Source: Octopus bimaculoides
Lineage: Eukaryota
NCBI RefSeq assembly: GCF_001194135.2
Contig: NC_068982.1
Span: 150,650,247-150,714,246 of the forward strand
Length of the DNA: 64,000 bases
Direction: 5' to 3'
The first letter of the stretch is position 1, and each line of letters opens with the position of its first letter. The notes under the pieces are model-generated. The model worked only from the letters and a program-made list of their open reading frames with translations, did no database searches and was not told the origin of the DNA. Positions 24 to 60,629 of this stretch are shown in pieces. The translations under genes and the position numbers were made by a program.

Positions 24-60629
<60,606 letters not shown>

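Follow-up and report, generated by a model that had tools for sequence, protein, structure and literature searches.

A dynein heavy chain gene of Octopus bimaculoides with a degenerate AAA1 site is a probable cephalopod member of the DNAHX subfamily

Results

The locus contains the 5′ part of a dynein heavy chain gene

The DNA analyzed here, referred to as the window, is a stretch of 64,000 nucleotides from Octopus bimaculoides contig NC_068982.1. One large gene occupies its minus strand, extending from position ~60,635 to the beginning of the window. The gene encodes a dynein heavy chain from the tail to AAA2 (24..60635), equivalent to residues 503-2130 of an Argonauta heavy chain described below. 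The window holds the 5′ two-fifths of the gene, namely the tail, the linker, AAA1 and most of AAA2. The mapped exons comprise about 1,350-1,600 codons, and neither stops nor frameshifts occur in them.

The tail is represented by a DHC_N1 exon of the outer-arm alpha/DNAH5-8 type (60279..60635, minus strand, as are all exons below) and the linker by a DHC_N2 exon (31903..32271). The exon at the linker/AAA1 boundary (QTLYLRDTLNTICRKRVKHCTDFDWRRYLKCYLVSDN; 18426..18537) is followed by the AAA1 Walker A exon (16935..17131) with the P-loop GTPDAGKK at 16947-16970, an exon located between Walker A and Walker B (SLANVIAQFYYLLKCNPHFDASSIQRIIQGSSM; 16398..16496) and the Walker B exon (15117..15254). Further downstream, AAA1 continues with an exon carrying a degenerate sensor-I/box VII motif (12509..12735; MTAAFSEESN at 12673-12702) and a small-domain exon (11052..11208; SFTLS at 11169-11183), whose acceptor at 11208 is firm and whose 3′ end is approximate. 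Two AAA2 exons were assigned, one with an intact P-loop (6526..6779; GPPGSGKT at 6742-6765) and one with the putative arginine-finger motif ASPMTITK at 27-50 (24..131). AG and GT dinucleotides were present at every AAA1 exon boundary checked, and the five AAA1 exons splice in frame. A comparison of the joined AAA1 exons with the Pfam profile AAA_6 (PF12774, 'hydrolytic ATP binding site of dynein motor region'), as proposed in a first-pass annotation of this DNA, gave a score of 136 bits against a cut-off of 25.2 (E=1.9e-39).

The DNA of the window is AT-rich (GC about 0.30-0.45) with abundant TG/CA microsatellites and interspersed repeats. A SINE-like interspersed repeat with the translation ...GCTRLQSDL(A/T)WFLWLDA... 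is found in many introns in both orientations, for example at 1715-2164, 16037-16222, 26055-26294, 46570-46839, 57812-58204, 58793-59113 and 62478-62744; the sole copy tested, 57812-58204, gave no Pfam match. A remnant of a Tc1/mariner-type transposase lies inside a tail intron (55856-57139, plus strand), in DNA that is locally GC-rich. It matched Pfam DDE_3 (E=8e-7), and HTH_23 matched weakly upstream of this. An ORF fragment (...RLRWYGHV..MDEDS..RGRGRPRKTWDE...) occurs twice in similar form on the plus strand at 178-1605, adjoining a PHD-finger-like fragment; Pfam matches were weak (AT_hook, PHD), and this segment, in the last intron that the window covers, is a probable retroelement relic.

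The Walker B motif of AAA1 lacks the Asp-Glu pair

According to the first-pass annotation, the AAA1 Walker B motif at 15222-15245 reads WLCLADGN instead of WGCFDEFN. Direct reading of the minus-strand codons (15245..15222: TGG CTC TGT CTT GCT GAT GGA AAC) yielded exactly this translation, the canonical dynein counterpart being W-G-C-F-D-E-F-N. A HMMER alignment of GCWLCLADGNKL with Dictyostelium dynein 3vkg was gapless around the motif, as had been stated for the consensus, and a longer stretch, GCWLCLADGNKLSHKSLDVV, was likewise aligned to the Dictyostelium motor with no gap near Walker B. Codon reading and alignment agree that DE is replaced by AD at 15228-15233: the Walker B Asp is changed to Ala (15231-15233) and the catalytic Glu to Asp (15228-15230). 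The remark that A-to-G editing could not restore DE is also correct, because conversion of GCU into GAU or GAC requires a C-to-A change and conversion of GAU into GAA or GAG a U-to-A or U-to-G change, neither of which is an A-to-I event.

The exon bearing the motif (15254..15117) consists of 138 nucleotides or 46 codons with phase 0/0 and encodes the peptide EGCWLCLADGNKLSHKSL...RKL, which aligns with approximately residues 1701-1746 of the Argonauta protein. It is preceded by a polypyrimidine tract and an AG acceptor and followed by a GT donor. In the genomic sequence, the proposed junctions 16398/15254 and 15117/12735 connect it in frame to the exons 16496..16398 upstream and 12735..12509 downstream, with AG/GT borders.

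A motif scan of all six frames between 12000 and 19000 with the patterns DEFN, W.C.[DE][DE], [LIVMF]DE[LIVMF]N and G.W.C matched the known site alone and revealed no second Walker B-like exon. Permissive tblastn of a canonical DNAH8 Walker B segment against the whole window returned noise (best E=1.2). At the DNA level, the window therefore provides no alternative exon that supplies DE. No assembly gap is present between 18537 and 11052, the block containing the AAA1 exons.

Assembly gaps, visible as runs of N, were noted at 38365-38916, 2175-2184, 13568-13577, 62709-62732 and 63567-63594. The 552-N gap at 38365-38916 is intronic. Argonauta residues 1025 to 1027 run on from one side of it to the other without a break, which suggests that the gap conceals no exon.

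All catalytic elements of AAA1 are altered

Motif comparison in the same set of exons revealed that every catalytic element of AAA1 is changed and not Walker B alone. The canonical Walker A sequence GPAGTGKT is replaced by GTPDAGKK, in which the Lys is kept, the Mg-binding Thr has become Lys and the Thr of the GT-G segment Ala. Walker B is CLADGN instead of CFDEFN. The sensor-I/box VII sequence (I/V)TMNPGYAGR is replaced by MTAAFSEESN with loss of the sensor-I Asn, and the loop corresponding to the phosphate 'backdoor' of the DNAHX preprint (bioRxiv 10.1101/2025.01.18.633724) is devoid of its Pro and Tyr. In the sensor-II motif, DFGLR has become SFTLS with Ser at the position of the Arg. Finally, the ASPATVSR-type motif of AAA2, which we take to be the arginine finger reaching into the AAA1 site, reads ASPMTITK, a substitution of Arg by Lys. 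The AAA2 P-loop GPPGSGKT is unaltered; this P-loop binds ATP without turnover in dynein.

The tail and linker belong to the outer-arm alpha (DNAH5/8) class

A 928-aa concatenation of tail and linker was compared with dynein chains in the PDB. The Chlamydomonas gamma heavy chain scored 382 bits and human DNAH5 341 bits, followed by the Tetrahymena 'Dynein heavy chain, outer arm protein' (7k58_A and relatives) with 291 bits, DNAH10 with 187 bits and DNAH9 with 144 bits. A single tail exon also favored the outer-arm alpha/DNAH5-8 class. The AAA1 region alone showed no class preference, the E values ranging from 1e-30 to 1e-20 across classes. Such an equal distance to all classes is abnormal, because AAA1 usually is the best-conserved part of a heavy chain. 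The tail and linker scores indicate that the outer-arm alpha (DNAH5/8) class gave rise to the gene.

The joined AAA1 exons had no match in a protein index from which chains above ~3,800 aa seem to be absent, and a 1,341-aa concatenation matched solely the protist DHC_N2 fragment P0001 there. Relatives were found with the tail exon 60279..60635 as query. The top match was P0002, a protein of Argonauta hians annotated as 'dynein axonemal heavy chain 5 isoform X2' (GAB1604755.1), with an identity of 63% over the tail exon, 71% over AAA1 and 67% over 1,182 trimmed columns. In tblastn, residues 503-2130 of P0002 could be placed on a series of consecutive exons of the window, all of them open and uninterrupted by stops or frameshifts. 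By these sequence criteria, GAB1604755.1 is the ortholog of the window gene. The Argonauta model has 4,378 aa rather than more than 5,000 and looks both incomplete and misnamed.

Two regions of the window extend beyond the Argonauta model. An exon-like ORF at 29967-30218 (minus strand; FQELQQQNLIFAPINTNWCKVMAKYAEIKNVLQV), which in our reading fits the conserved dynein linker pattern, is absent from P0002. For the 13-kb stretch 55125-42126, P0002 gives just 25 residues, and further ORFs exist in the region 44047-55125 (minus strand).

The next-best full-length relatives were other than canonical DNAH5/8 chains, namely Rhinatrema bivittatum XP_029452717.1 (P0144; 5,251 aa, labeled 'dynein gamma chain, flagellar outer arm-like'), Hymenochirus boettgeri KAG8444848.1 and Erpetoichthys calabaricus XP_051780690.1. 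With the caecilian protein as query, sequences from Nanorana, Polypterus and the cnidarian Clytia hemisphaerica (XP_066926676.1; full model 5,039 aa) were also recovered. The window gene is about 35% identical to these amphibian, polypterid and Clytia relatives compared with 26% to canonical DNAH8. No mammalian member was among the retrieved relatives, which are annotated as gamma chain or 'DNAH5/8-like'.

Phylogeny, profiles and insertions place the gene in a DNAHX-like clade

In neighbor-joining (NJ) trees with 200 bootstraps, which are distance-based, contain no canonical cephalopod DNAH5/8 sequence and show all clade members as long branches, the window gene and its Argonauta counterpart fell inside a clade formed by Rhinatrema, Hymenochirus, Nanorana, Erpetoichthys and Clytia (99.5-100%). 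DNAH8 of Bufo and Colinus and the outer-arm chains of protists fell outside this clade. The placement was unchanged when AAA1 and AAA2 were omitted and 900 tail/linker columns were used (100% bootstrap).

Profile HMMs of the DNAHX-like and the canonical sets were built without the cephalopod sequences. The window gene scored 1,030 bits with the DNAHX-like and 733 bits with the canonical profile. Resolved by region, the scores were 772 versus 556 for tail and linker, an advantage of 216 bits, and 195 versus 137 for AAA1.

Insertion sites provide a further character. Relative to canonical chains, the Argonauta protein carries insertions in the tail, directly behind AAA1 and at several positions of the stalk/MTBD, at sites where the vertebrate members have them as well, and the post-AAA1 insertion, which follows sensor-II and is common to DNAHX-like proteins, is encoded in the window gene. 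Shared derived residues are T(E/D)KCF in place of TDRCY upstream of Walker A and the exchange of the finger Arg by Lys. At the AAA2 finger position, cephalopods and amphibians have Lys, other members Gln or Asn and canonical chains Arg. Long-branch attraction is a possible source of the grouping; evidence against it comes from the tail-only tree, the profile comparison and the indels in common.

Three further long heavy chains of non-animal or unassigned origin group with the DNAHX-like clade: P0133 from Salpingoeca infusionum (5,517 aa), the metagenomic P0127 (5,076 aa) and P0081 from an ENA contig (4,481 aa). NJ bootstrap values were 89-99.5%, the tail/linker-only tree included, and long-branch attraction is possible for these sequences. 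Their AAA1 motifs are degenerate as well, for instance GSSKTGKY and LLSECW in Salpingoeca. Protist or choanoflagellate relatives are at odds with the reported absence of the subfamily from protists (bioRxiv 10.1101/2025.01.18.633724). Deviating motifs were also noticed outside the clade. The Bufo gargarizans 'DNAH8' P0058 (XP_044147017.1), otherwise canonical, has GPAAAGKT, DEFSR and TMSPKHADF in AAA1, which could point to divergence of a paralog or to a faulty gene model. Two DNAH8-type bird proteins, P0162 and P0158, carry GPAETGKT (GPAGT in P0158, where the model breaks off), DEFNR and TMNPGYAG.

The AAA1 fold is conserved while its catalytic residues vary

The catalytic motifs differ from member to member within the clade. 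Canonical chains have GPAGTGKT as Walker A and DE in Walker B. The corresponding sequences are GDHGVGKT and DD in amphibians, CDQPTGRS and SN in Clytia, GMPGTGKT and AE in Argonauta, and GTPDAGKK and AD in the window gene. The exchange of the Walker B Asp by Ala is common to the window and Argonauta sequences, whereas the Glu-to-Asp and GKT-to-GKK changes are specific to the lineage of the window gene.

Canonical chains are most strongly conserved in AAA1, with 54-62% identity between vertebrates and protists, compared with 30-36% in the tail. In the DNAHX-like clade, the values for AAA1 and tail were 31% versus 35% between the window gene and Rhinatrema, and 22% versus 30% between the window gene and Clytia. 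Between the window gene and Argonauta, AAA1 was 72% and the tail 65% identical. Retention of the AAA1 fold accompanied by drift of the catalytic residues is, as far as sequence can tell, the signature of a pseudo-enzyme and not of a pseudogene.

Taken together, these data support the reading of the first-pass annotation, which had nevertheless missed the wider pattern of AAA1 loss. The Walker B loss is real, and it is a property of the family rather than a peculiarity of the locus.

Discussion

Identity of the window gene

Chai et al. described DNAHX, a 5,272-aa sperm heavy chain of Lytechinus variegatus (XP_041462850) that is an offshoot of the outer-arm alpha chain and belongs to a subfamily ranging from sponges to frogs and absent from reptiles and mammals (bioRxiv 10.1101/2025.01.18.633724). 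Additional insertions were reported in the tail, the stalk-MTBD and AAA4S, along with a lack of conservation in the AAA1 motifs, which 'vary substantially' from one subfamily member to another (bioRxiv 10.1101/2025.01.18.633724). The urchin protein is abundant in sperm and its structure was solved by cryo-EM; it lacks motility, has ATP bound at AAA1 in the pre-powerstroke conformation and forms a heterodimeric 'dynein-X' with another heavy chain (bioRxiv 10.1101/2025.01.18.633724). Its authors tied the subfamily to external fertilization and assigned membership by reciprocal best BLAST to XP_041462850 (bioRxiv 10.1101/2025.01.18.633724). Neither the solved DNAHX chain nor XP_041462850 was found in our copy of the PDB, and molluscs are not mentioned in the main text of the preprint (bioRxiv 10.1101/2025.01.18.633724).

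The amphibian Walker A sequence GDHGVGKT corresponds to the reported Thr-to-Val exchange of DNAHX (V2221 in urchin, V2241 in Rhinatrema), and the amphibian clade members also fit DNAHX in length, taxon range and outer-arm affinity. From these matching features, rather than from a direct comparison with the urchin protein, we infer that the Rhinatrema/Clytia clade is DNAHX. As the features of the clade match, the window gene is identified as its cephalopod member. We thus regard it as probable that the window encodes a cephalopod heavy chain of the DNAHX type, derived from DNAH5/8, whose AAA1 domain is a structural pseudo-ATPase.

Alternative explanations

The explanation that competes best, although we consider it improbable, is a duplicate of DNAH5/8 specific to molluscs or cephalopods, in which AAA1 was lost independently and the likeness to DNAHX reflects convergence and long-branch attraction. 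The trees are NJ trees alone with long branches throughout the relevant part, the data set is devoid of canonical cephalopod DNAH5/8, and the substitutions are not those of the vertebrates (AD versus DD; GTPDAGKK versus GDHGVGKT). An independent origin, however, would not account for the tail/linker tree, in which the cephalopods group with Clytia and the vertebrates at full bootstrap support, nor for the tail/linker profile advantage, the shared insertion sites in the tail, behind AAA1 and in the stalk/MTBD, and the derived residues in T(E/D)KCF and the AAA2 finger.

Alternatively, the window gene could be a decaying pseudogene, a dead cephalopod duplicate of DNAH5/8 with neutrally eroding AAA1 motifs. 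Many catalytic residues have indeed disappeared together, the P-loops of the window gene and Argonauta differ at four of eight positions, and the gene evolves fast, as seen from the identity of just 67% between two cephalopods. Neutral decay is very unlikely, since about 1,350 codons in more than 25 exons are open with canonical splice sites, AAA1 is conserved in Argonauta no worse than the tail, and the AAA2 P-loop is intact. The clade moreover spans cnidarians to amphibians with full-length open proteins, and its urchin representative is an abundant sperm protein accessible to cryo-EM. We rejected the pseudogene on the basis of the open reading frame and the Argonauta ortholog.

The orphan chain DNHD1, which likewise has no catalytic Walker B residues, is a slightly weaker candidate still. 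It is the classic example of a dynein-like protein with a poorly conserved AAA1 that is needed for sperm flagella, and the AAA1 region of the window gene displays no class preference. Orthology to DNHD1 was rejected because the tail is of the DNAH5/8 class: tail and linker score about twice as high with outer-arm alpha/DNAH5-8 chains as with any other class. In addition, the nearest relatives are amphibian, polypterid and cnidarian with no mammalian one retrieved, and DNHD1 is present in mammals. The distinction is drawn from class affinity, taxon range and the description in the preprint.

Least probable of all is a normal motor gene in which the AD exon results from faulty assembly or annotation or belongs to a mutually exclusive pair; although the window contains assembly gaps and the exon is known from genomic sequence, this was rejected at the DNA level because the AAA1 region is gap-free, the six-frame scan and whole-window tblastn yielded no second Walker B-like exon, the neighboring exons are equally non-canonical, and the independent Argonauta assembly has the same Ala along with other changes.

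Predicted consequences for heavy chain function

The AAA1 fold appears to have been retained under purifying selection, while each class of residue on which Mg-ATP hydrolysis depends has been exchanged. Loss of the Walker B Glu or of the Walker A Lys or Thr in AAA1 abolishes dynein motility. The primacy of AAA1 in the dynein motor is stated in PMC2533788. With the acidic Walker B pair, both sensors, the Walker A Thr and the arginine finger acting in trans all missing, AAA1 is, judged from enzymology, predicted to be unable to hydrolyze ATP. If so, the linker would not be driven through a power-stroke cycle, and the product of the window gene would be a non-motile heavy chain with a structural or regulatory role.

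If urchin DNAHX is a guide, the DNAH5/8-like tail may pair with another heavy chain and with accessory chains. Most likely, such a non-motile chain would hold or ferry an inhibited partner during assembly of sperm flagella or cilia.

Binding of Mg-ATP by the window protein appears doubtful owing to the combined exchange of the Walker B Asp by Ala and the Walker A Thr by Lys. Octopods fertilize internally or through spermatophores, and caecilians internally. DNAHX-like genes in an octopod (P0002) and a caecilian (P0144) are a poor fit with the proposed link to external fertilization. A more far-reaching proposal, which we put forward tentatively and consider rather unlikely as a whole, is that the AAA1 pocket of the cephalopod DNAHX type is free of nucleotide or contains a Mg-free nucleotide, that the inhibited conformation is kept by the protein alone, and that persistence in internal fertilizers together with protist relatives contradicts both the external-fertilization link and an animal origin. 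In the Mg-free variant, the amine of the new Lys would sit roughly at the position of the metal. If this proposal is true, cephalopod DNAHX-type chains are one step past the published 'ATP-locked' state.

The ATP cycle of AAA1 drives every motile dynein, and a conserved chain without AAA1 function must do a non-motile job. Coleoid cephalopods keep such an AAA1-dead heavy chain, the ortholog of which is labeled just 'DNAH5' in the database; gene counts of invertebrate 'outer-arm dynein' include pseudo-motors. As both the Walker B Asp and the Walker A Thr are gone, the pocket of the window gene is more dismantled than that of the urchin prototype. This makes it a natural case in which to test whether the proposed locked, non-motile state depends on bound ATP.

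Comparison with known dynein heavy chains

The window gene resembles DNAHX as a distinct, non-mammalian branch derived from DNAH5/8 with extra insertions and with AAA1 motifs that are unconserved and variable. Urchin DNAHX is reported to keep Walker B, to hold ATP and to have Walker A Thr-to-Val and sensor-II Arg-to-Lys exchanges. In contrast, the window gene has AD in Walker B, a Walker A motif ending in GKK and Ser in sensor-II. The general principle is already known from the description of DNAHX; what is new is a more degenerate and taxonomically informative member from cephalopods.

DNHD1 shares an AAA1 domain without catalytic Walker B residues and, being presumed non-motile, is needed for flagellar assembly. 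It differs from the window gene, whose tail and linker are clearly of the DNAH5/8 type, in having no affinity to a canonical class and in its presence in mammals. DNHD1 and DNAHX have no sequence homology to each other (bioRxiv 10.1101/2025.01.18.633724).

With canonical DNAH5, DNAH8 and the Chlamydomonas gamma chain, the window gene has in common the tail/linker architecture, the best overall similarity, the AAA_6 fold and the AAA2 P-loop. In these chains GPAGTGKT, CFDEFNR, TMNPGYAGR, DFGLR and ASPATVSR are invariant, whereas all five motifs are altered in the window gene. Engineered AAA1 Walker A and Walker B mutants of cytoplasmic dynein carry equivalent lesions, but these are single-residue changes in active laboratory motors. 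In the window gene, by contrast, the whole AAA1 site has drifted in a protein that is evolutionarily maintained.
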